DNA of 64,000 nucleotides from Vitrella brassicaformis CCMP3155. Lineage: Eukaryota; Protista; Chromerida. Under the pieces are notes generated by a model. The model was not told the origin of the DNA, made no database searches, and worked only from the letters and a program-made list of their open reading frames with translations. Positions within the stretch are counted from its first letter, which is position 1. Each line of letters opens with the position of its first letter. Position numbers and translations under genes: made by a program. The stretch spans positions 1 through 64,000 of the forward strand of contig CDMY01000033.1 in the NCBI GenBank assembly GCA_001179505.1, read 5' to 3'. Positions 193-20,780 of this stretch are shown here, one piece after another.

Positions 193-1389
193 GTTCACGA
201 TGTGCTCGCGGCGAGCCTTGACAGCCTCCTCGTTGAGCCGCACTGGGGGTGACTGCGAAAAGTCGAGAATCAGGTCCCACGGACCCAATACCACCACCGG
301 GGCCGGGTGTGGGTACGAGGTTGGTTGGGCTTTCTGACAGTTGGCACAGCACGCCGGCCGCTGGAACCAGAACTCCGCTTCTCCGCCCTGCTGAACCGCC
401 CCGCCTCGTACCGACCGATGAGTGCAGTTGCTGCAAAGCCAGATGCCGGTGAAGAACAGCTGGTCCACCGAGTGCACGAAAGGCTTCAGCTGCTCCGGGG
501 GCGCTAGATCCACGGGATGGACACCAGGGGGCAGAGAGGGAGCGGGGTGGGGGGGTGTGGGATCGTCCTGCTGCTTCTGCTCGTTCTCCTGCTCTCGCTC
601 CTCAGAGCCTTCCTGGTCCTCAGAGTCTCTCTGTTGCTCCTCGTGGTCGTGGTGTCGCTCCTCAGAGTCTCCCTGTTGCTCCTCGTCCTCGTGGTCGTCG
701 ACCTCTTCAGTGTTGGGGTTGTGTGTGTGTTGATGCTCGGGCGTGGCGGATGGGGGCTGTGGTGTGGCCGTCTGCGGCGGTGGTGTGGTCGTCTGCGGGT
801 TTGTGGGGTGCTGCTGGGTCTCGGACGATTGCGACGGCTCAGCAGCCTCAGGCGTCTGCACACGCGCCGCTGCCTCTGCTCGGACGACAGCAGCATGCTT
901 GAGCTCAACACCACCGTGGCGCCGCGCAGCACCACCGCTCCTGTCCAACGTGACGTGTCGGTGGGGGGGCGGCGGATGACGAGAACGAGACCGAGAGCGA
1001 GAACGAGAGCGAGAACGAGACCGAGGACGAGGTGCACGCTTGCGGGGAGGGGGAGGGGACCGCCGAGTCGCCGTGGGACGCTCGATCTCCTTCTGCACCA
1101 CGGACTGACGGCGCTTCGCGTCGTTCACACTCTTGTCGTACTTCCCCCTTGAGATGGCCGACTTGTCGCGCCGCTTATCGAGCTCATCTATCTCGTCAGT
1201 GATCTGCTCTTTCGCGTAGAAGAAGCCCACCAGCTCGTGCTGGTCTCGTCGGTCGTATTTCACTCTCCTGAGCGAGCGATCGACTTTCTCACGGATGGTA
1301 CTGGGCGCGTTGTGGTCGGTGAACAGGTGGCCACGGACGAGATCAGAGGGTCGAGGAGGACGAGATGGACGAGATGAGGGCTTGGACAT
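181..1389 (-). CDS. Intronless 402-aa hypothetical protein: basic N-terminal part, RS-dipeptide run, acidic/Q-rich linker, C-terminal CxxC...CxxC zinc-ribbon-like motif
   Basis: Long ATG-initiated ORF with WLCSNC...CCANC near the C-terminus. No recognisable family; may be TE-derived. Confidence 0.55.
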   Translation of the reverse strand: MSKPSSRPSRPPRPSDLVRGHLFTDHNAPSTIREKVDRSLRRVKYDRRDQHELVGFFYAKEQITDEIDELDKRRDKSAISRGKYDKSVNDAKRRQSVVQKEIERPTATRRSPPPPRKRAPRPRSRSRSRSRSRSRSRHPPPPHRHVTLDRSGGAARRHGGVELKHAAVVRAEAAARVQTPEAAEPSQSSETQQHPTNPQTTTPPPQTATPQPPSATPEHQHTHNPNTEEVDDHEDEEQQGDSEERHHDHEEQQRDSEDQEGSEEREQENEQKQQDDPTPPHPAPSLPPGVHPVDLAPPEQLKPFVHSVDQLFFTGIWLCSNCTHRSVRGGAVQQGGEAEFWFQRPACCANCQKAQPTSYPHPAPVVVLGPWDLILDFSQSPPVRLNEEAVKARREHIVNLAK

Positions 1390-1426
1390 GACGACAGCAG
1401 AGAGGGCAGCAAAGAGGGGGCAGACG

Positions 1427-1726
1427 NNNNNNNNNNNNNNNNNNNNNNNNNNNNNNNNNNNNNNNNNNNNNNNNNNNNNNNNNNNNNNNNNNNNNNNNNN
1501 NNNNNNNNNNNNNNNNNNNNNNNNNNNNNNNNNNNNNNNNNNNNNNNNNNNNNNNNNNNNNNNNNNNNNNNNNNNNNNNNNNNNNNNNNNNNNNNNNNNN
1601 NNNNNNNNNNNNNNNNNNNNNNNNNNNNNNNNNNNNNNNNNNNNNNNNNNNNNNNNNNNNNNNNNNNNNNNNNNNNNNNNNNNNNNNNNNNNNNNNNNNN
1701 NNNNNNNNNNNNNNNNNNNNNNNNNN
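1427..1726. other. Assembly gap (300 N)
   Basis: N run. Confidence 1.
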
Positions 1727-3033
1727 AGACCAACCTCCCCGCAGCCAAACGACAGACCCGCAGATGGAAAAAGAAGACACGCAGATGCACCAGTGTTACG
1801 AAAGTGTCATGGTGCGGATGTCCTCTCTCTGGCAACGGTCAAACCCACACGCGAAGCATACCAGCCATCCATACGCGCAGCCAAACACACCAGACAACTA
1901 ACTGATCTCAGCCAAGCGAGAGAGAGAGAGAAAGAGAGAGAGAGATAGCCAGCCACACACATGCTTTCGTGCCGTCCGCTCTGAGTGAGAGTACCATGTT
2001 CCCCTGACTGATGTGCGGGTCAAATGCATGTGTTGTCTGCCTCAGTGGGTGGTCAGCGAGGGGACGGACCTTGTGGCGGATACGTAGGCACACACTGGGA
2101 GGCTAGAGAGACAACACAGACGGACAGACAGGCAGATCTCAGGCAGATATGCGTGCATGTAATCCCGGTGAGACATGACCCTCAAAAGCATCCCCAGACA
2201 TGCATTCGGCCAGTCGGGAGGAGAGGAGGGGAGTAGGTCAGCACAGGGGCGAGTCCTGGAAGGACGAGGAGGCACATGGACTCAGAGAGAGAGCAAGATC
2301 TGGCTGAGGGAAGATGATGCAAGAAGGGCAGCTAGCTGTTGTACGAGTACTCGTGCCGCCTCGCTGCGGACTCACCGGGAGGGTGACCAGCTGGGCGACG
2401 TACTCGATATCCACCATCACTCACTTGCGCACTCCACCATCACTCACATGAGCACTCCACCATCACTCTGCGGCTCCAAGGGCGGCTTGGGAAGACGCCC
2501 TGCCGAAGGGAATGGTCGGAAGGACCAAAGATCGTGCCGAAGCAACAGATCTCAAGAGAATGACTCAAGTCATATCGGAAGCGAACGATAACGAATCATG
2601 AAACACAACCGGCACTAACTCGCTTGGCCAGCTTCTCTATCTCCCGTCTTTGCCCCCAGGCCCACGCATGCATGCACTGCAGGCTTATCTAGCGCTCTTA
2701 TTCATCAGCAGCCCTCTATCTTCGCTGGCTGCCTCCCCTGTGCCCATCTACGGCTTGTCGTCCTGCCTGCCTACACACGGCTACCATCCTTCAGCCTGTC
2801 ATCCATCAGCATCAGCATCAGCTCCATCCATCCATCCATTCATCCAGGGCTGCATCCTCTCCATCGGCACACGGTCCACGGCATTCAATCCATCCGTCCA
2901 TCACGTCCAGACACCTACGTCCACACTTCCAGTCATCTGAGCCGAGCGCCTTCATCAGGGCCACAGACAGGGGCGAAGGGCATCGTGAGCACTTCGCAAC
3001 AGTGTGTGTGGGGGGGAGGGGGGGGGGGGGGGG

Positions 3034-3333
3034 NNNNNNNNNNNNNNNNNNNNNNNNNNNNNNNNNNNNNNNNNNNNNNNNNNNNNNNNNNNNNNNNNNN
3101 NNNNNNNNNNNNNNNNNNNNNNNNNNNNNNNNNNNNNNNNNNNNNNNNNNNNNNNNNNNNNNNNNNNNNNNNNNNNNNNNNNNNNNNNNNNNNNNNNNNN
3201 NNNNNNNNNNNNNNNNNNNNNNNNNNNNNNNNNNNNNNNNNNNNNNNNNNNNNNNNNNNNNNNNNNNNNNNNNNNNNNNNNNNNNNNNNNNNNNNNNNNN
3301 NNNNNNNNNNNNNNNNNNNNNNNNNNNNNNNNN
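3034..3333. other. Assembly gap (300 N) flanked by poly-G on both sides
   Basis: N run with G homopolymers at both edges. Confidence 1.
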
Positions 3334-7605: not shown

Positions 7606-7994
7606 CCCTCCCGAACATTGTGTGGCGCCTGCGTTGTGTGCGGGTGGGTGGTCTGCGAGCACACCTCAGTGATGCCAAACGCAAGACAGTACACAAGCAA
7701 GAGAGGGAGCAGTGGATGTATATGTGTTCATACGTGTTGCTGTTGTGCGAGCAGCATGCACAGTGAATGATTAAAAGAGGCCTGCACAGTTCAAACGTAG
7801 CTAAAGAGATGAGAGAGCAACAAGCGCGTGGGACACAATGACGCATTCACTTTAAAGCACTTGAACGCATCCACTGACGCGCTTTCCTGCGACGTAAGTT
7901 GTCCTTTTTACTGACGTATAAAGCGCGACGGACGCCACACACGACCCATCCGTCTGGTGGTTGGCATCACTGACCTGTTCTGCGTGCCTCCTTA

Positions 7995-8230
7995 CCTTCT
8001 CTTTCTTTCCTTTTTTCTGCCTTTGTGTGTGTGTTTCAGTTTTTTTGTCTTTCTGCGTGTCTTTCTGTGTGTCTTTCTATCTTTCAGTCTGTCTTTCCGT
8101 CTATCTGTCTATCTGTCTTTTTGTCTTTCCGTCTGTCTGTCTATCTGTCCTTCTGTCTTTCTGTCTTTCTGTCTTTCTGTCTTTCTGTCTTTCTTGTTGT
8201 ATCTTTCTGTCTTTCTGTCTCTCTGTCTTC
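7995..8230. repeat. (TCTG/TCTT)n pyrimidine-rich microsatellite
   Basis: tctgtctttctgtctttctgtc... Confidence 0.9.
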
Positions 8231-8232
8231 CT

Positions 8233-8735
8233 TTCGGTTCGGTTTGGTTTGCCTCGCCCAAGTGGTAGAGGGCTGCTCAAATGGTTCGCTTCAGTTCGGT
8301 TTGGTTTGCTTTGCCTCGCCCACCTGGTGGAGGGCTGCTCAAATGGTTCGGTTCAGTTCGGTTTGGTTTGCCTCGCCCACCTGGTGGAGGGCTGCTCAAA
8401 TGGTTCGGTTCAGTTCGGTTTGGTTTGTCTCGGCGTCTCCTGGTGGAGGGGTGCTTGGAATGGTTCGGTTCGGTTCAGTTCGGTTTGGTTTGCCTCGCGC
8501 ACCTGGTGGAGGGCTGCTCAAATGGTTTACTTCAGTTCGGTTTGGTTTGTCTCGGCGTCTCCTGGTGGAGGGGTGCTTGGAATGGTTCGGTTCAGTTCGG
8601 TTTGGTTTGTCTCGGCGTCTCCTGGTTGGTGGAGGGGTGCTTGGAATGGTTCGGTTCGGTTCAGTTCGGTTTGGTTTGCCTCGCCCACCTGGTGGAGGGC
8701 TGCTCAAATGGTTCGGTTCAGTTCGGTTTGGTTTG
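8233..8735 (-). repeat. Minisatellite, about 8 units of about 57-63 bp, two interleaved subtypes, inverted relative to the 7360-7605 array
   Basis: Units GGTTCGGTTCAGTTCGGTTTGGTTTG followed by either CCTCGCCCACCTGGTGGAGGGCTGCTCAAAT or TCTCGGCGTCTCCTGGTGGAGGGGTGCTTGGAAT. Confidence 0.9.
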
Positions 8736-9035
8736 NNNNNNNNNNNNNNNNNNNNNNNNNNNNNNNNNNNNNNNNNNNNNNNNNNNNNNNNNNNNNNNNN
8801 NNNNNNNNNNNNNNNNNNNNNNNNNNNNNNNNNNNNNNNNNNNNNNNNNNNNNNNNNNNNNNNNNNNNNNNNNNNNNNNNNNNNNNNNNNNNNNNNNNNN
8901 NNNNNNNNNNNNNNNNNNNNNNNNNNNNNNNNNNNNNNNNNNNNNNNNNNNNNNNNNNNNNNNNNNNNNNNNNNNNNNNNNNNNNNNNNNNNNNNNNNNN
9001 NNNNNNNNNNNNNNNNNNNNNNNNNNNNNNNNNNN
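8736..9035. other. Assembly gap (300 N)
   Basis: N run. Confidence 1.
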
Positions 9036-9770
9036 CATGCGAGCAGTAAGAGAAAGAGGACGATTGGACGCACATGGAATGCTGATTCCTGTTGCATGGG
9101 CAACTCAGGTCCAGCGCGGCCGACGTAGAATGGCTGCATTGTTCGCTTCTGGGAGAGGTGAGGCGACCCGCACATCGGTAGGGAGCTCGCGATGAGGTGG
9201 GCGTGATGGTGGCGCTTGCGTAGCCCACCACAGGCAACGTGAGGAGAAATTCTCCTCACATTGCGATTTGCGAGCTCAAGTACATGTTCAAGCTGTTTCA
9301 GTGACCGTTGTCGTCTTGTGCGGCGACTGTGGCTCGAGAAACTTGTGGATATATGCTCAGTCGCCTGTCAAAATACGCCGGAAGATGTCCAGAGAGTACC
9401 TCAGTTTCTCACTGATTTCGCATCGTCAACGCACGTTCGACTTGCGCCTGCATCTGCGTAGGCCACAGACGTGTAGAGCAATTACGTACGGTCATCTTTG
9501 CACTGATTGTCAATGATTTATCGTATTGCGTTCGCAGGATATCGGTCAGATAGGTAATCGGCATTTGTTGCCATTCATAAGGTGAAGATGAAGCCCACAC
9601 AACCACACAACCGTGCGCTGCAGATCTGGATGCGTGGGTGTGTGTCTGTCTGTCTGTCTGTGTCTGTGTCTGTGTGGTGTCGTTCAGCGTTACACACACA
9701 GGATGATCAGCTGTCATTGCCTAGTGCTCAAGCTTGTCGGCGAGGTGACGAACGCCTTTGAGAACATGGC

Positions 9771-9826
9771 AATGCTCACCAATGTCAAATGTCCTGCTAA
9801 TGCTCACCAATGTCAAATGTCCTGCT
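9771..9826. repeat. Perfect 28-bp tandem duplication
   Basis: AATGCTCACCAATGTCAAATGTCCTGCT x2. Confidence 0.95.
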
Positions 9827-10330
9827 TGCCAGGCTCCGCCAGACTTAGACATACAAAACACAAGCAGACAAGACGGCAACTCGAGCCACTCACTGCAGAC
9901 ACAAGCCTGCATCATGTGCACGTAGCGAAACAGAGACACTTTAAGCTTTCGTCTGCATCCATCAGACAAACACTCATGTGTGACTCAATGACCCGCAATA
10001 CGACACAGTGAACACCAGGAGGAGGGGGAGGGGGGGGAGGAAGACACAATGCCAATTGCGTGGTGCCGTTCACTCGCCGCGAGCTCCGCCAAAGCTCGCC
10101 ACCATCCTCTTCGATCTGCCTTACAATGGGCTAACCCTCCCTGGCGCGATCAGAACCGTTATAGTAGCCGTTTACGTTCTCCCTTCAACCCCGTCTTTCA
10201 TCGTCAATTCATCATCCCTGGCGATTTCATGCCTCAGGGCATCTATGGCAACAAGCACCTGTCCATATATCTAGGGCAGCACTGTCCTTGCCGCATCAAT
10301 GCTGGTCCATGCTATCCGCGCCTACTGTAG

Positions 10331-11241
10331 CTATTCATCCATTCGGACATCCCCCGCTGGCGGAGGGAGCACGACGGTCTCTACCCTTGGGCGCTTAGGG
10401 CGCTCTGAGCAATGTATGGCCTGGTCGATGGCCCGCTGGTTGAGGGCCGCCTCCCGTGTGGAGGGCTGTCGTGGGGGTGGCTGGGGTGGGGGCAGGGTCC
10501 GTCCCTCCTCCTGGGCCTTCCTCCGTTCCTCCTGTTTCCTCTTCTTCCTCTCTGCGGCCGCGGCTCTGCCTTGCGCAATCTTCTCCCGCAGTTCTTTCTC
10601 TCGTTTCCTCTTCTTTCGCTCTTCCGCCTCAGCCCTATTGCGTTCGATCCTCTCCTGCTGCTCACAGGTCAACCCTGGCTGGGTCCCCTGGGGCTCGTCC
10701 GTTTCCGTGGGGTCGTCCGGTTCCATGAGGTCCCCCAGTGATGACGGCGGCGATATCCAGCCGTCCGAGGCAGGGCCGTCGAACGGAGGCGTCACCCAGC
10801 CGTCTCCTGTGTCAGCTGGTGGTGAGGGTGGAGGCGTTCATTCCCCTTGGACTATCTTTCTGCCGGTGCGCTGCAGCACTGGTCGGCGGAGCGTGATTCG
10901 AGCGGCGTTGAGCTTCCGGGCTGGGAGGTCCCCAGGGATTGTCTCTGTGCGCGCGTGTATTGCGGATCGGCCTTTTTGGACATTGTCGCCTGTCGGGATC
11001 CTGCCAGTTGTGGCGGCTAGCCTCGCGGCTTCCCTTCGCAGACACTCATGCGGGTGTGGGGGGACGGATGGGTCCATGTCGCTGGGTGCTCGTGGGGTGT
11101 CCGACTGGCCCGCTGTGCCCTGTTTCGCCGCTATCCGCCGAGCCGTCTGCTCGCTCCGGCGTGCCCATGTGTTGGATCTTCCCACCTTGTATGCCAGTCG
11201 GCTGATGTCCAGCGACGTTCGCACGGCCCTGTTATGAAGTT
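10331..11241 (-). pseudogene. Probable LINE C-terminal extension with RPA32-binding-like helix and basic coiled coil
   Basis: Reached by one frameshift near the C-run at 11283-11289 (DATTAKWRALLVELHNRAVR...) and read through TGA at 10838 in frame into LTCEQQERIERNRAEAEERKKRK. Confidence 0.6.
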
Positions 11242-12327
11242 CTACGAGCAGCGCCCTCCACTTGGCTGTTGTGGCGTCCCGCGGGGGGGGACTAATAAAT
11301 GGATGACGCCTGTCGTTCCGATGAACACTTGCTCGCGGTTTGTCGGTGGTTCTTCAATGCTCTTCAGGACGTCTTCGTCTGAAGTGAAATGGACGTCGAT
11401 TGTCCTCAGGGTGCTCATTGTGGGCCGATCAATGATGTGAATGCGGCTCGGCTCTCCAATCCCCGCAAGGTCGCATTTGTATGTCTTGGATATGTCGGTC
11501 AGCAGTCTAGCAGCGAAGGCAAGCATGTCTTTCTGTCTGGCTGTTCGGACTTCGCAGAGCAAATCGTGCTGGCAGGTCAGAAGGAGGTGCGTGTGTGGCG
11601 CATCGCTCTGTGGGATGTGGGTATAGCAGACATTGCAGGTGTCGCGTGGTCCAGTGGTCCGTCCTTGTGGTGGCTCTGACCGTCGCGGGCGTCCGTCATC
11701 GTTCGATTCGTCGCTATCTTGTGAGGTATCCGATGAGTCCGCCAGGTCAGCCGCTCTACCTGTTTCCATGGCAATGTTGGCTCGCGTGGCGAATCGGGGT
11801 TTTGCCCCATGGCGTATCTCGAGTATCCGCGCCCTTTCGTCCACACATAATCCTCCTGCAGATGTCAGGCAGAGGTTTGCGATCCTGTCACCCTCGGAAG
11901 ATAACGCAAATCGGCGGGGGCTGCCTTCAGCTTGTTGCGATCGCATGGTATGGTATTCCAAGTATTCTGCTGCCACCTCTGCCGGTGTCAGTATGCGATT
12001 CGCTGTCGTCGTCGTCTTTGGCTGTCCCGCCAGGCCCCACTTCGTCGATCCAGGAGGGGGAATGCCGAGCCTCGTGAGGTCTATCATCGGGCTGCTACCG
12101 TCAAGGGTCCCCTTGCTCGCCAGTTTGTCGGCCTTTTCGTTTCCCTTTATCCCCGTGTGCGACGGGGACCAGTGTAGGGCTATGGGGCGTCCGTACCGTT
12201 CAGCAGCAACGATGATTAACTTGGCAGTTGAGGTCAGCGTGCGCTTTCGCATTCTCTGTGGCGCGTATAGCAGCTGATAGAGAAGATGGATGCTCGAGTG
12301 GCTGTCGATGAAGATGTGTACGTGGTG
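11242..12327 (-). pseudogene. LINE RNase H second half and CCHC zinc knuckle
   Basis: Same frame as 12328-15108, separated only by TAA at 12328-12330: HIFIDS...WSPSHTGIKGNEKADKLA; DTCNVC...HTHLLLTC. Confidence 0.9.
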
Positions 12328-15278
12328 TTAGCCCTCCTTTCCGGCGGTGTCGATCGCTCTCGCAAGCGCGGCAATCTCCGCGTGGCCCACGTGCGCCCAG
12401 GGTGGCAGTGCGTAGGCGAGGTTTGTCTCTGGGCTCGTGTCTTGTGAGTACACGCCCAGGACGCACCGGGCTCTGGCGTCAGGGTCAAAGTTGTTCTGGT
12501 GGTGGGAGCCATCCGAGAAAACGTGCGGGCCCTTGTATCCGCTGTAGGTGGGTTCAGGGGGTTGTGCCGGCCGCTGGAAGTGAGCCAGCCCTGCTTGTCC
12601 CAGCCAGAAGCCTACACTGCGTAGAGAAAGGTTCTCGTCTCTGCTCGTTCTGAAGCTCTTGCTCTTGAATGCCGTTTTCAGGCCTTCGGCCTTCGGCGCC
12701 TCGTGTCCCCCCAGGAGGTAGACAGCGATGCCAATCCGCCCCCTCAATGTCTTGCCTGCGAGGAGGTCGGTGTAGTCGATGTCTCCCCAGTATGTCAGTG
12801 GGAGAGACGATGAGTGTCCGCACTTGAGTTTCTGGCATTGTTGAGGGGCCGTGGCTGCCAGCCTGTCAAGCTTTTCGTCCACTATCGAGTCAAGCCGCGC
12901 AATCACCAGGACAAACGTCTCTCCGTCCTCCGTGAGGTGAGCAATCAGTGTATCGAGGAGAGGGAGTGTGTTGTTAAGTGTCTCATTGCATGCATCTATG
13001 GCCGTGTATTCTCGCACCAGTGTGTGTATGTGTGCGGGTGGTGCGAAGGCTGAGATATTGTCTCTTAGGTTTTGGTGCTCTATCTTGCTGTAGTATAGGT
13101 TAGCGTCGGGGAAAGCCTCTCGGAGGAGGGAGGAGTCCACGGCATGCTTTATGACGACTCCTTGCTCGGCTAGGGCCTCATTCAGGTGTTGGAAGAAGGC
13201 CCAGATCAGCTTGATTGGTCTCCCTCGTTTCGTGTGTGGTGTGGCCTTCTTGACCACGGCACACAGTGTCTCCTGGTTGGCCTGCAGTGGGGCGCTTGGC
13301 CTGCCCCCGTTCAGCTGTGTATTCAAGCGCTCGGCCACATACAGGGGGATGGACGCGATATAGCGTCCGTCTGCCTCATAGAAGGTCGCTCTTCCTGTCT
13401 CACTACAGATGTGGATCCGTTGGTCGCCAAAAGCCTCCATGTCGACGTCGAGGTCAGCGTGGGAGTGAAGGATCCTGTTTTCGTGCATAGGGAAGCTGAT
13501 GAGGTGCTTCGCGTTTTGCATGCTGCTGGCTGCATCTGCATCAGTTGCCTTCCCCTCGTCATCTCCAGTCTCTCCAGCAGGGGGGTTGTCTGGCGGTAGA
13601 ACGAACGCGTCCTGGTGGCCCTCTTGTTGGGCCTCCGGCGTGTCTCCCTCTTCTCCGTCTGCTGTAGTTCCCTGGTGGTTGTCGATCGGGCCGTCGTCCT
13701 CGCTCGTTGCCTTCACTCTTTGCCATCGTAGGTTGAGCTGCTGGTGTATCTGGCAAATATTTGTTAGGTATGGTGGAGGCTTGGCCGTGTCTCTGCTTAG
13801 GAGAGTGAGCAGCTCGATTGCCAAGGGGTCATTGGGGTCATTGATCAACCCTTGTAAGAAATCAGTACACCTCTCTATGTATGTGTACAGAGGGCTTTTT
13901 ATTCCCAGGCCTCCAAGGGACGCGGGGCTGCATAGGAGGTTTCGCGGCACTCCGGACCGTAGCCTGAGCATCCGCGCTACGCCTTTCAGAAACACATTCT
14001 GTAGTTTGAGGACCTGGCTGAGCGGTAAGATTGGCACACCTAGCTTGTAGCGCAGCATCCCGAGTAAGGACGATTCCATGTGTTGTATCTTCACCTCTAG
14101 GGTCGAGGTGGAGCAACACACGACCTGAAAGCGTTGTTCGATGGCGGCTTCCAGCTCCTCAAACAGGTGTTGCAGCTTGAGGCTGGCATCGATGGGAAAG
14201 CCCAGGTAGGGATATGTCTGCTCGCTTTCCAAGATGGGGCAGTTCTTCCATACGCTCGTGCTGAACTCTGCCAGCAGCTCTCCCTCGCTGTTCCAGAGGT
14301 CCCGTATGCTGCGTCCGCTCGGCGACCATCCAGTGATGCTGCTCTTTAGCGGGTTGATGACGAGGTGCATGGGCTGGGCCCGGAACGCCAGCAGCAGGAG
14401 AAGCTTGCGAAGTGCTACGATTCGGCGCGCTGGACAGGCCATGTCGTCCGCAAAAGGGTTGACACCCTTCCGTCGCCTTGTGTATCGGAGATGGATTGCC
14501 TCCGCGCTCGCGTTAATCTCCCGGACGATGGGGTCCAGGTAGAGGAGAAAGAGGAAGGGGGAGAGGGGGTCACCTTGTAGCAGGCCTTTTCGATAGGGTA
14601 TGCGGTCTGTTTTGCCAAACTCAGGGTGCGATATGCGTGTAGAGGCTGACGCCAGAAAGGTAGCTACCTGTGCAACCAGTGTCTCCGGGAAGCCCTGGCG
14701 TCTCATGATCTCAAGCAGGGTCTGATGGTCGACACAGCCGTACGCATCAAACAGGTCGATATACCCTATCCAAATCTCTTCCTCGTACGCCTGTGCGTCA
14801 GAGATAAGGTGCGCGAGCGTAGCAACTTGGTGGTGGCAAGATGAGTCAATGCGGAAGCCCTTATGCTGCTCAGCAATGATGCCGTGCTTCTCAGCGAGTT
14901 CTTTCGATTCAGCTTGGAGGGTCTTGGTGATGGCCTTGATAAATGGGTTTTGGGCTGATACCGGCCTCCAATTGCTCAGCTCGTGCGGGTCGTTCTTCTT
15001 GTATATATAGGAGGTTGTGGCTTCTCCAAGGACATGCAGGGTTGGCCTCCGTGGATCAAAATAAACAGTGCGTCCAGGAATGTCTCCATGACCACTGGCG
15101 GTGACCATTTCAGGATCTCCCCAGGCGTGTTGTCTGGTGTGGACTTGCCGTTGCCCAGCTTACCTATCGCTCGTTTAATAGCTTCCGGGCTCAGCCGGTC
15201 GGTTAAGGGGGGGGGGATGGGTAATTGTCCAGCTATAGGTTGGGCTGCTGCCCGTCCGCTAGGACAACGTCGAGCCAC
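12328..15278 (-). pseudogene. LINE reverse transcriptase region plus insert and first half of RNase H
   Basis: ORF 12328-15108 carries the RT core. The N-terminal RT subdomain (AIKRAIGKLGNGKSTPDNTPGEILK) is in ORF 14976-15278, with a frameshift near 15020-15045. Confidence 0.92.
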
Positions 15279-16765
15279 TCGAGCACGTCGGCGCTTGGGG
15301 GTGGAGGGTCATGTGCGTATTTCGCCTCGAAGCGATCGGACATCTCCCTCTGTAGTTCCTTAGGGCCGTTCGTCAGCGTTCCGTCTGCTCGTCGAAGCTG
15401 TGTCAGGTTCGTCGACCTTGAGACCTGCAGCTTGAATCTCTTGTTTGCTGTTTTCTGTGTCTCTTTGAACATGATCGAAGTGCGTCGTCCTGTGTCTCGG
15501 TCTGCTGCAGCGTTCTGCTGCTCGGTGAGCTTCTGCCGTTCTCAGACGTCAGACGACGAGCAGCAGCTGCCTCTGCAAGGGGAGGATGGGATGTCGCACA
15601 TCACGTCCGGCAAATTCGAGGTCGTCCGTCGCATCGAGGAGGGGAGAGACGGCAAGAACACGGGCATCTGGGTGACTGAGGTACTCGAGAAGCGGCAGTA
15701 CAGAGGAGCGGTGGCAGGGCTCCATGTGACTGCCGTACAGCTGCGGATGACGACCTCGGCCACCAAGCACGTGTTCGACACATCGCTGGATCGCCTTGAG
15801 GACTCTCTCAGCTGCCGGCTGGTCAAGGCGTTTCGGACCATCTTCTTGTTCATCCTGTGGGCATCTGATATGCGGGGCAAGGCGCTCTCGGAGAGCGCGC
15901 CGGGCGCGGCTGACGGCAGCTGGGCGGGGGACGAGAGTGTGCACCTGAAGGACAATCAGGAGGTGCTGATAACGATGCTGACGGATTTTCTCTCCTGGCT
16001 TCCAGTCGACACGCTGCAGGGAGTGCTGATCCGCATCATGGATGCGTCGACCACCAGATACGGCGACGAGCAAGGGGTCAACAACCGTCGCAAGGGTGTT
16101 GAGGTGGCCCTCCATTCCCTTGCTTCCAGATATGCTGCTCAGCACTGGTGCGTGAAACCGAGCGAGTGGCTGGGAGGTGTCGTGTCCATGATGCTCAACC
16201 GGCGATCTCGTCAACTCTCGCGCAACATGCTGACGGCTGTGCTCGATGTCCGCAGAGGTGCGGGAGGGGGGGTGAAGAGGCGGTTCCGACACGATCGGAA
16301 GAAGCCTCCCTTCATCCCCAGTGAGCTGGCTCTGAGGAAAGAGCGCGACAGCTATCTGTGTCTGACGTGGGATTCTGACGATGGGGCGTTGTCGCTGGGC
16401 AACGACTGGATGGCAGCTGAGCCGTTGAAGGCATATCGGACGGCGAGGGCGTCATCCCAGTGGTTCGAGAGCGTCTGGGTCAACATAGACAACAACACAA
16501 ATACATCGATTTTGTGGCACACCATCCTATCTGTGCTCCCAGAGGGCCTGGGAGCACAGATGGAAGGTGGTGTGCCTGTGTATTGTAGATCTGTGCTGTT
16601 GAGGGCGGATGGAGGCGAAAACAAGTCCTGAGGGCCTTTAAAGGCTAACAGAACTGTTTGGAAGTCTCTAGGGCCTCTCTTGTCCCTCTCCAGCAGCTGC
16701 CTGTGTGCAGCGACATACAAGAGACAGGGGACAGAAAGAGACAAGGGCAGTGCGATCGATAGAGA

Positions 16766-16885
16766 CATATGTGTGTGTGTGTCTGTGTGTGTGTGTGGGT
16801 GTGTGGGTGTGTCTGTGTGGGTGTGCGTGTGTGGGTGTGCGTGTGTGTGTGTGATGTGTGGGTGGGTGGGCCGGTGGGTATGTTT
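16766..16885. repeat. (GT)n-type microsatellite
   Basis: gtgtgtgtgtgtctgtgtgtgtgtgtgggtgtgtggg... Confidence 0.9.
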
Positions 16886-17134
16886 GTATGTATGTGTATC
16901 TGTATCAGGGAGCCGGTTGGTTGGTTACATGGATGGACAGAGAGACACACACATGGTGCATTCAATCGATTGGCGTGTCCATTATGCAAACACAACAAGT
17001 CTGATTTGTTGACACAAGACCGATACTTGAGAATAAGTCCGATTCACACGAGAACGTGTTCAGATTCTGTGAACGACGTGCTTCTGACCCGCTCAGACGT
17101 TCGGTTCGCGCCTGCTGGCACATCCACACATAAA

Positions 17135-17822
17135 ATCCCCGATCGCTGCGCGCCCGCTCCCCACGTCGGCCGTCTCCTGCTGGTCCTGGAGGTGTGGATG
17201 CCGAATGCCGAATGCCGAGTCGCAATGCGATGGTGAGTAACTCTCACCTCGCCTTGCGACAGATCACCGTGAGAAACGCCCCCGGGCCCTGCACAGCTCA
17301 GGGCCTGGGGCAACGCCCAGGCGGAACCTCCGCAGAGGGGAGCTGGCGGGTGGGAAAAACCAAAAGATCATCGACACCACAATGCGCGTCCACACGCTGA
17401 CGTGGACGCGCCATCAACGCGAGCCCGGCATCTGGGCCAAGGATCGCCCGGCGGCTCGCACTCGCGAGCAGGCTGCGAGTGCGAGAGGGAGCCCTCACCG
17501 CTCACGCTGCGCTCGGGGGATCCTACGCCACCGGACGAAACGTCCTCAAGGCTCCGAATCCCCGATCGCTACGCGCCCGCTCCCCGGGTCGGCCGCCTCC
17601 TGCTAGTCCTGGGGATGCGGATGCCGAATGCCGAATGCCGAGTCGCAATGCGATGGTGAGTAACTCTCACCTCGCCTTGCGACAGATCACCGTGAGAAAC
17701 GCCCCCGGGCCCTGCACAGCTCAGGGCCTGGGGCAACGCCCAGGCGGAACCTCCGCAGAGGGGAGCTGGCGGGTGGGAAAAACCAAAAGATCATCGACAC
17801 CACAATGCGCGTCCACACGCTG
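17135..17822 (-). repeat. Tandem array of the YR-element terminal cassette (B-spacer-A-B-spacer-A partial; about 423-bp period)
   Basis: Matches the A and B repeats at 20289-20780 and 28299-28514, with subfamily-specific differences (AAAAGATCATCG; lacks one GAGGGAGTGC). Confidence 0.9.
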
Positions 17823-20288: not shown

Positions 20289-20379
20289 ACCGTGAGAAAC
20301 GCCCCCGGGCCCTGCACAGCTCAGGGCCTGGGGCAACGCCCAGGCGGAACCTCCGCAGAGGGGAGCTGGCGGGTGGGAA

Positions 20380-20595
20380 AAAACCAAAACATCATCAACA
20401 CCACAATGCGCGTCCACACGCTGACGTGGACGCGCCATCAACGCGAGCCCGGCATCTGGGCCAAGGATCGCCCGGCGGCTCGCACTCGCGAGGGCAGGCT
20501 GCGAGTGCGAGAGGGAGTGCGAGAGGGAGCCCTCACCGCTCACGCTCCGCTCGGGGGATCCTACGCCACCGGACGAGACGTCCTCAAGGCTCCGA
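20380..20595 (-). repeat. Split direct repeat A2
   Basis: Near-identical to 28299-28514. Confidence 0.95.
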
Positions 20596-20780
20596 ATCCC
20601 CGATCGCTGCGCGCCCGCTCCCCGGGTTGGCTGTCTCCTGCTGGTCCTGGGGATGCGGATGCCGAATGCCGAATGCCGGGTCGCAATGCGATGGTGAGTA
20701 ACTCTCACCTCGCCTTGCGACAGATCACCGTGAGAAACGCCCCCGGGCCCTGCACAGCTCAGGGCCTGGGGCAACGCCCA
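20596..20780 (-). repeat. Split direct repeat B1
   Basis: Repeated at 20289-20342 (partial), 17135-17319 and 17558-17742. Confidence 0.93.

Follow-up and report, generated by a model that had tools for sequence, protein, structure and literature searches.

A candidate RPA32-docking helix resembling that of TIPIN in the ORF2 tail of a Vitrella LINE

The long C-terminal tail of the ORF2 protein (ORF2p) of a LINE from the alga Vitrella brassicaformis contains a predicted helix whose resemblance to the RPA32C-binding motif of TIPIN appears to be more than chance. We tentatively propose that ORF2p may bind RPA32C directly through this TIPIN-imitating helix, a contact that would target or stabilise target-primed reverse transcription at replication forks or repair gaps; we consider this a possible rather than a probable reading of the element. 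The window analysed here is a stretch of 64,000 nucleotides (contig CDMY01000033.1, positions 1 to 64,000 of the forward strand) and coordinates given without a contig or locus prefix refer to it. The motif was first pointed out in an earlier annotation of the window made without database searches (the first-pass annotation). The element is known from two broken copies in this one chromerid alga.

The element, its copies and its surroundings

The element lies on the minus strand of the window and is composed of the following parts, listed from the whole to its 3′ end.

10111 to 15543, minus strand: broken, 5′-truncated copy of a low-copy non-LTR retrotransposon (LINE), delimited by homology to its sister copy
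14194 to 15000, minus strand: reverse transcriptase (RT) domain (Pfam RVT_1; 70.5 bits, E = 2e-19; residues 37-305 of the ORF at 12328-15108)
12109 to 12570, minus strand: RNase H domain (RNase_H, 42 bits, E = 1.3e-10, in P0001, the gene model of the sister copy)
11572 to 11637, minus strand: CCHC-type zinc knuckle CNVCYTHIPQSDAPHTHLLLTC (CX2CX12HX4C) downstream of RNase H, found with a regular expression on the translation and without a Pfam match
10331 to 11353, minus strand: tail reading frame of ~340 codons, mostly predicted to be disordered, with its stop at 10333-10331
10111 to 10330, minus strand: 3′ untranslated region (3′UTR) without a poly(A) or microsatellite tail, delimited by comparison of the copies

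Only two copies of this LINE are present in the genome assembly, which comprises 1064 contigs and 72.7 Mb: the one in the window and a sister copy that is split between two contigs (C61:194762-199886, which runs to the contig end, and C747:4-1161, at the contig start). The two copies are 92-96% identical from position 15543 to position 10111 and end at the same 3′ base (10111), and their flanks are unrelated on both sides. Beyond 15543 the sister copy extends further in the 5′ direction with an APE-like ORF and a 744-codon upstream ORF, and the start of the window copy corresponds to a point ~3.6 kb downstream of L049:1328, where the first long ORF of the sister copy (putative ORF1) begins. 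Since the sister copy is the longer of the two at the 5′ side, the window copy is an ordinary 5′-truncated LINE insertion. Neither a poly(A) or simple-repeat tail nor a target-site duplication is visible at either of the two copies; many LINE clades are without these features, and their absence does not exclude membership in the LINEs.

The ORF that contains the RT domain (15108-12328) and the ORF that carries the end of the RNase H domain together with the knuckle (12252-11242) share one frame, the sole break in which is a TAA at 12330-12328. This stop codon interrupts the RNase H domain of the window copy and is replaced by TGG in the sister copy. An APE-like endonuclease is absent from the truncated window copy and present in the sister copy, where the ORF at L049:3596-4603 matches Exo_endo_phos_2 with a score under the Pfam cut-off (22.1 bits, E = 1.4e-4) and contains the LLQET...GDFN motifs. 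ORF2p is a single polyprotein consisting of APE, RT, RNase H, CCHC knuckle and a tail of ~340 residues. By its sequence features the element can be classified as an APE-type, RNase H-bearing LINE whose copies share their 3′ end and are variably truncated at the 5′ end.

The closest proteins among 1.84 billion representatives are about 25-30% identical, and in the RT domain only. The closest RT relatives are APE and RT-containing LINE proteins, some of which also have RNase H. Neither this protein set nor metagenome scans yielded a close relative of the family, and a search of metagenome contigs for relatives of the tail and RNase H region returned generic RNase H matches only; the LINE family is, on these comparisons, an orphan. 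Some of the distant, LINE-like RT relatives carry a PCIF1_WW domain, an unusual accessory for a non-LTR element, which is located between RT and RNase H in P0041 and after RT in P0012, a protein that has no RNase H match.

Several other repeats lie in or next to the two copies. The 5′ flank of the window copy (15546-17800) is pieced together from other repeats, which have matches on C584, C887, C967 and C386 and at window 20289-20780; the region is a nest of transposable elements. A different repeat (9300-10116), which matches at least 60 places in the genome, adjoins the 3′ end of the LINE; its homology begins at 10116 and thus takes in the final 5 nt of the LINE, an overlap that could be microhomology at insertion or chance. 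The interval 7957-8700 is a tandem repeat with long ORFs in several frames (with units such as GSVRFGLPRPPGGGLLKWF) that looks like a minisatellite, and an N gap follows at 9001-9035. The sister copy holds an insert of ~1.4 kb (L049; C61:196836-198240) at the equivalent of window 13437-13449. This insert, which includes an N gap, is bounded by terminal inverted repeats of ~29 nt. The same 13 nt of the LINE align at either side, perhaps as a target-site duplication, and in appearance the insert is a MITE or DNA transposon.

Resemblance of the tail helix to the TIPIN motif

Three features of the tail bear on the resemblance to TIPIN.

10604 to 10672, minus strand: RPA32C-binding-like motif of the TIPIN/SMARCAL1 type, LTCEQQERIERNRAEAEERKKRK, recovered by profile searches and lying at the start of a predicted helix
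10535 to 10591, minus strand: second, degenerate motif-like stretch, LREKIAQGRAAAAERKKRK, read from the translation
10379 to 10399, minus strand: PKRPRVE, an NLS-like basic patch near the C-terminus, recognised from sequence only, part of which is lost in the sister copy through a 9-nt deletion

The ORF at 10331-10795 on the minus strand holds both stretches (...GTQPGLTCEQQERIERNRAEAEERKKRKREKELREKIAQGRAAAAERKKRKQEERRK...), with the motif located 114 codons ahead of the stop of this last reading frame. The first-pass annotation had placed the motif at 10672-10604 on the minus strand, which is where it is encoded. It had also described a weaker second copy, and the corresponding stretch is indeed encoded at 10591-10535, but its standing as a motif did not survive: it scores 2.4 bits against the TIPIN profile and 13 bits (E about 10) genome-wide and is indistinguishable from a K/R/E/A-rich composition. 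The motif itself reads LTxEQxxRIERNRxxAEERK, followed by NLS-like basic clusters, and agrees with the class consensus L[ST]xE[EQ]xx[RK][IL]ExN[RK]xxAxx[RK]. It is identical at 21 of 23 residues between the two copies; the changes are C to R and Q to K, the latter at the one consensus position that differs between them. The LINE has EAEERK where human TIPIN has hydrophobic positions (LALERR), and the TIPIN of the host is likewise acidic here (AAEERK). Two RKKRK clusters in or near the second stretch look like nuclear localisation signals.

The likeness to the RPA32C-binding helix claimed by the first-pass annotation was recovered in blind profile searches from both directions. A profile of the two LINE motifs, compared with 177,635 distinct PDB sequences, gave a sole match of borderline significance (E = 0.06), the sequence of chain L of 7pfo, in which it covers residues 195-215 of human TIPIN, a segment that we take to be the RPA32C-binding motif of this protein. 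Addition of the host TIPIN motif to the profile lowered the E value of human TIPIN to 0.0077. In the opposite direction, a profile built from host and human TIPIN only placed the LINE tail first after TIPIN itself (20.7 bits, E = 7.7e-5) when the window and ~50 other loci were searched as 4547 six-frame ORFs (342 kb of protein); the sister copy scored 6 bits lower than the window copy (E = 0.007) and the next match had E = 2.2. Genome-wide, the only strong profile matches were the two LINE copies and TIPIN, behind which came a NOC3-like host protein with E = 0.056 and, with E = 1.5, the basic region of a bZIP. BLASTP of host TIPIN against the LINE motif aligned 18 residues, 11 of them identical (E = 0.003). 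The LINE motif has the dialect of the host, ERNRxxAEERK(R/K), with the spacing of human TIPIN, which is one residue off that of host TIPIN. A single 57-residue peptide gave no match to the PDB with phmmer, where profiles alone matched. None of the 150 nearest RT relatives contains the motif, and no piece of the LINE element matches the Swi3 domain (PF07962), so that the motif alone is common to the LINE and TIPIN.

The host has both the receptor, RPA32 including its winged helix, and a TIPIN of its own that uses this motif dialect. The RPA32 gene is located on C708 (L056, C708:226420-229647; minus strand, 1339-3183). Its OB fold matches solved RPA32 chains with E values from 2.4e-8 to 8e-5, and its C-terminal winged helix (RPA_C, 16.5 bits) is split by an intron; the wing YQTADEDVW aligns with human YSTVDDDHF. 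The (TG)n-rich intron inside the winged-helix domain is in-frame and stop-free, and a naive ORF therefore reads through it. The protein contains long glycine runs, and word-based protein searches for a database entry of host RPA32 found none, one of them having been swamped by glycine-rich words. Host TIPIN is encoded on C366 (L060, C366:308426-311653; ORF 1186-2361) and has a Swi3 domain. Its motif LSPEELAARLERNRKAAEERKR is at the C-terminal end of this ORF (...LSPEELAARLERNRKAAEERKRLKQL), with an intron directly after ...AEERKR and before LKQL..., and a degenerate copy, ATKARIAAAKERALEKKRKK, is located ~70 residues before the strong one. TIPIN, SMARCAL1, UNG2 and XPA are named as partners that carry RPA32C motifs, without residue numbers, in PMC11387677 and PMC10598209. 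A search for the HARP domain of a host SMARCAL1 gave no match, but the controls gave none either.

Structure prediction is in keeping with a docking helix to a modest degree. In a single-sequence AlphaFold2 model of the 312-residue tail of C747, helices were predicted at residues 7-57, 203-255 and 274-290, with low pLDDT in the remainder. The motif is located at the start of helix 203-255 with pLDDT values of 92-98, and the ~145 residues that precede it have pLDDT values below 50 in this low-depth model. A helix-forming peptide within a disordered region, as for a docking helix, thus finds modest support from the model. Prediction of the complex between RPA32C (L056:1477-1833, read through the intron) and the tail peptide (window 10580-10687) reached 0.27 against a mark of 0.34, a value that speaks neither for nor against the contact. 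Look-alikes of the helix in the ESM Atlas were single-helix matches, which are meaningless, and were set aside.

The main alternative accepts the tail as part of ORF2p and takes the helix to be a charged segment for nuclear import or nucleic acid binding, the likeness to the RPA32C motif being a coincidence of composition. We regard this as plausible, if somewhat doubtful. The two RKKRK clusters and PKRPRVE resemble classical nuclear localisation signals, the similarity to TIPIN outside the motif is not significant (p = 0.06), the second stretch adds nothing significant and the LINE-only profile is borderline. Other K/E-rich host proteins also give partial profile matches, which arise easily in a K/R/E-rich helix, as in the NOC3-like and bZIP host proteins. 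When the motif is scored without gaps (BLOSUM62) against that of host TIPIN, however, p is 7.6e-4 if the whole tail is shuffled and 3e-3 if shuffling is confined to the charged block; composition-preserving shuffles reach the score in only 0.08-0.3% of trials. The sole PDB match is exactly the RPA-binding stretch of TIPIN, with all four rare residues (L, T, I and N) in register, and LTxEQ..RIERN is not needed for a nuclear localisation signal.

Reading frame of the tail and origin of the motif

Two further features define the relation of the tail to the rest of ORF2.

11283 to 11290, minus strand: C8 homopolymer at which the tail frame departs by one base from that of RNase H/CCHC, from comparison of the copies
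10838 to 10840, minus strand: in-frame TGA found in the window copy only, TGG in C747 and in the independent run X4

According to the first-pass annotation, the tail continues the RNase H/CCHC region through one frameshift and one in-frame TGA. This description holds: the tail frame of the window copy is offset by -1 at the C8 run, the length of which is confirmed by the independent contig X1, and the TGA follows downstream. The annotation had suggested a test of whether the tail is in frame with RT in young copies; in the sister copy it is in frame with ORF2, with TGG in place of TGA and C9 in place of C8. In C747 the tail frame runs without interruption through 312 codons, from the beginning of the contig as far as the stop, and the three indels that separate the copies in the tail (18, 6 and 9 nt) are all multiples of three. 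The C747 assembly begins inside the C run and carries a further 1-nt deletion, so that its own frame junction is not shown by this contig. The junction is spanned by X10, a contig of the sister copy with its own 3′ flank that comes from a marine sediment metagenome of 2025. X10 has C9 instead of C8, together with an in-frame 3-nt insert at 11296, and on frame reading the RNase H/CCHC frame fuses with the tail frame, with the reservation that Logan contigs are possibly chimeric between the two LINE copies. The tail lies inside the shared element and ends at a common stop that is followed by the 220-nt 3′UTR. The TGG in place of TGA, the indels in multiples of three, the C9 that joins the frames and the location inside the shared element place the tail within ORF2, and we take it to be the C-terminal extension of ORF2p. 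The first-pass annotation had named an early end of intact copies, a separate flanking gene and lack of conservation of the motif as findings that would speak against its claim; none of the three was encountered. The two copies are homologous down to 10111 and share 21 of the 23 motif residues.

Because the sister copy has TGG, C9 and TGG at the corresponding positions, the TAA, the one-base loss and the TGA of the window copy are private lesions. The window copy is dead, and any docking function therefore belonged to an active ancestor; both LINE copies are broken. Runs X10 and X12-X14 of the 2025 marine sediment metagenome share words with window 10050-12400, with smaller shares in X12-X14. 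Since X10 is the sister copy with its own 3′ flank, the alga or a very close relative was present in that sediment.

It seems unlikely to us that the tail was not translated with ORF2 and is instead a 3′ region that has decayed or never coded, or an ORF of its own further downstream, with a fortuitously open frame in the sister copy. Such a reading could draw on the window copy, in which the tail is out of frame and contains the TGA, on the lack of an ATG near the start of the tail frame, on the start of C747 within the C run with its extra 1-nt deletion and on a pN/pS between the copies that is not significantly below 1; Ka/Ks is 0.69 on 27 substitutions, too few to be informative. It is opposed by the 312 open codons of C747, the frame-keeping indels, the TGG that stands for the TGA of the other copy and the joined frames of the X10 contig. 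In addition, the true 3′UTR after the shared stop behaves differently from the tail, with 1 mismatch in 220 nt between the copies compared with 27 in 921 for the coding tail. The RNA fold of this 3′UTR is not better than that of shuffled sequences (z = +1.1), and its low divergence could reflect selection for recognition by RT or gene conversion.

Quite unlikely, in our view, is the acquisition of the motif region by template switching from a host gene, TIPIN or another RPA partner, as a useless passenger. The ERNRxxAEERK(R/K) dialect is host-specific and common to Vitrella TIPIN and the LINE, and the LINE tail and host TIPIN each pair a strong copy with a degenerate one. There is, however, no BLASTN match to the TIPIN gene (29 of 66 nt are identical over the motif), nowhere else in the genome resembles the tail, the spacing is one residue off that of host TIPIN and equal to that of human TIPIN, and the likeness ends at the edges of the motif. 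With no nucleotide similarity to TIPIN and none outside the motif, recent capture is unlikely, and convergence or an old acquisition is the more likely origin of the motif. A DNA-binding, bZIP-like basic region is a very improbable identity for the helix and was rejected, as the other weak genome match of a 50-residue query was indeed such a region (RIRRNRASARESQRRKRE) but had an E value of only 0.85-1.5, and as the LINE pieces have no Pfam bZIP match, do not have the invariant positions of the basic region (N-x2-AA-x2-[CS]-R) and are without leucine heptads downstream, and hence without a leucine zipper.

Proposed docking and comparison with known systems

We return to the proposal that the motif is a docking helix. 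Docking of the tail helix on RPA32C in the manner of host TIPIN, with tethering of ORF2p and its RNA, is to our mind slightly short of an even chance. In this mechanism, the helix, of the TIPIN/SMARCAL1/UNG2 class, would bind the acidic cleft of the C-terminal winged helix of RPA32. While target-primed reverse transcription or synthesis of the second strand is under way, this contact would keep ORF2p and its RNA attached to single-stranded DNA coated with RPA, at forks or repair gaps. Nuclear import would be the task of the neighbouring RKKRK and PKRPR clusters.

If the proposal is correct, direct RPA capture would be an evolved strategy of non-LTR elements, the coupling of LINEs to replication or repair could be tested at the level of a peptide, and there would be good reason to screen ORF2 proteins systematically for motifs in their long, unexplained C-terminal tails. 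Its reach is that of one alga and of two broken copies of an extinct-looking family. Text searches of the literature found no paper that pairs an RPA-binding motif with retrotransposons, in agreement with the first-pass annotation, which knew of no description of this kind for a LINE ORF2; the papers on ORF2p and RPA that were found concern indirect recruitment, and term searches met L1 ORF2p together with PCNA, a PIP box and replication forks in PMC5821460 and PMC10830416.

The closest known counterpart is the helix of human TIPIN, which shares with the LINE the core LTxEQQxRIERN(R/K)xxAxER and a location within disordered sequence that adjoins basic residues. The LINE motif differs in being part of a retrotransposon polyprotein without Swi3 and in the replacement of human LAL by EAEE, and it is known from its sequence. 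Among the LINEs, ORF2p of human L1 has been linked to PCNA and to the replication fork, and work attributed to Taylor et al. in 2013 reportedly showed by experiment that it binds PCNA through a PIP box. Like the motif described here, the PIP box is a short docking motif in a LINE ORF2 protein directed at a core protein of the replication fork; in contrast, the partner in L1 is PCNA and the motif is located between EN and RT, whereas RPA32 is the proposed partner here and the motif is in the C-terminal tail. The targeting domain of Ty5 integrase, in work attributed to Brady et al. in 2008, is said to imitate a Sir4-binding motif of the host. Ty5 and the LINE are alike in that a retroelement protein carries a copy, a few residues long, of a host docking motif for a chromosomal platform, but Ty5 is an LTR element with the motif in its integrase, Sir4 as the partner and heterochromatin targeting as the outcome. 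It is thus already known that retroelements reach chromosomal platforms via small docking motifs, to which an RPA32C-type helix would add a variant.

The PARP2/poly(ADP-ribose) system of L1 is the closest parallel in terms of the partner. According to PMC8210275 (citing Miyoshi 2019), L1 integration sites recruit RPA, and retrotransposition is promoted by it, which makes RPA at the LINE integration intermediate an aid to the element there as it is proposed to be here. The recruitment of RPA to L1 is indirect, via poly(ADP-ribose) (PMC8210275), whereas a direct contact between ORF2p and RPA32 is proposed for the Vitrella element. The tail helix, if it docks as suggested, would be a direct counterpart, encoded as a motif, of the RPA dependence for which human L1 takes an indirect route.
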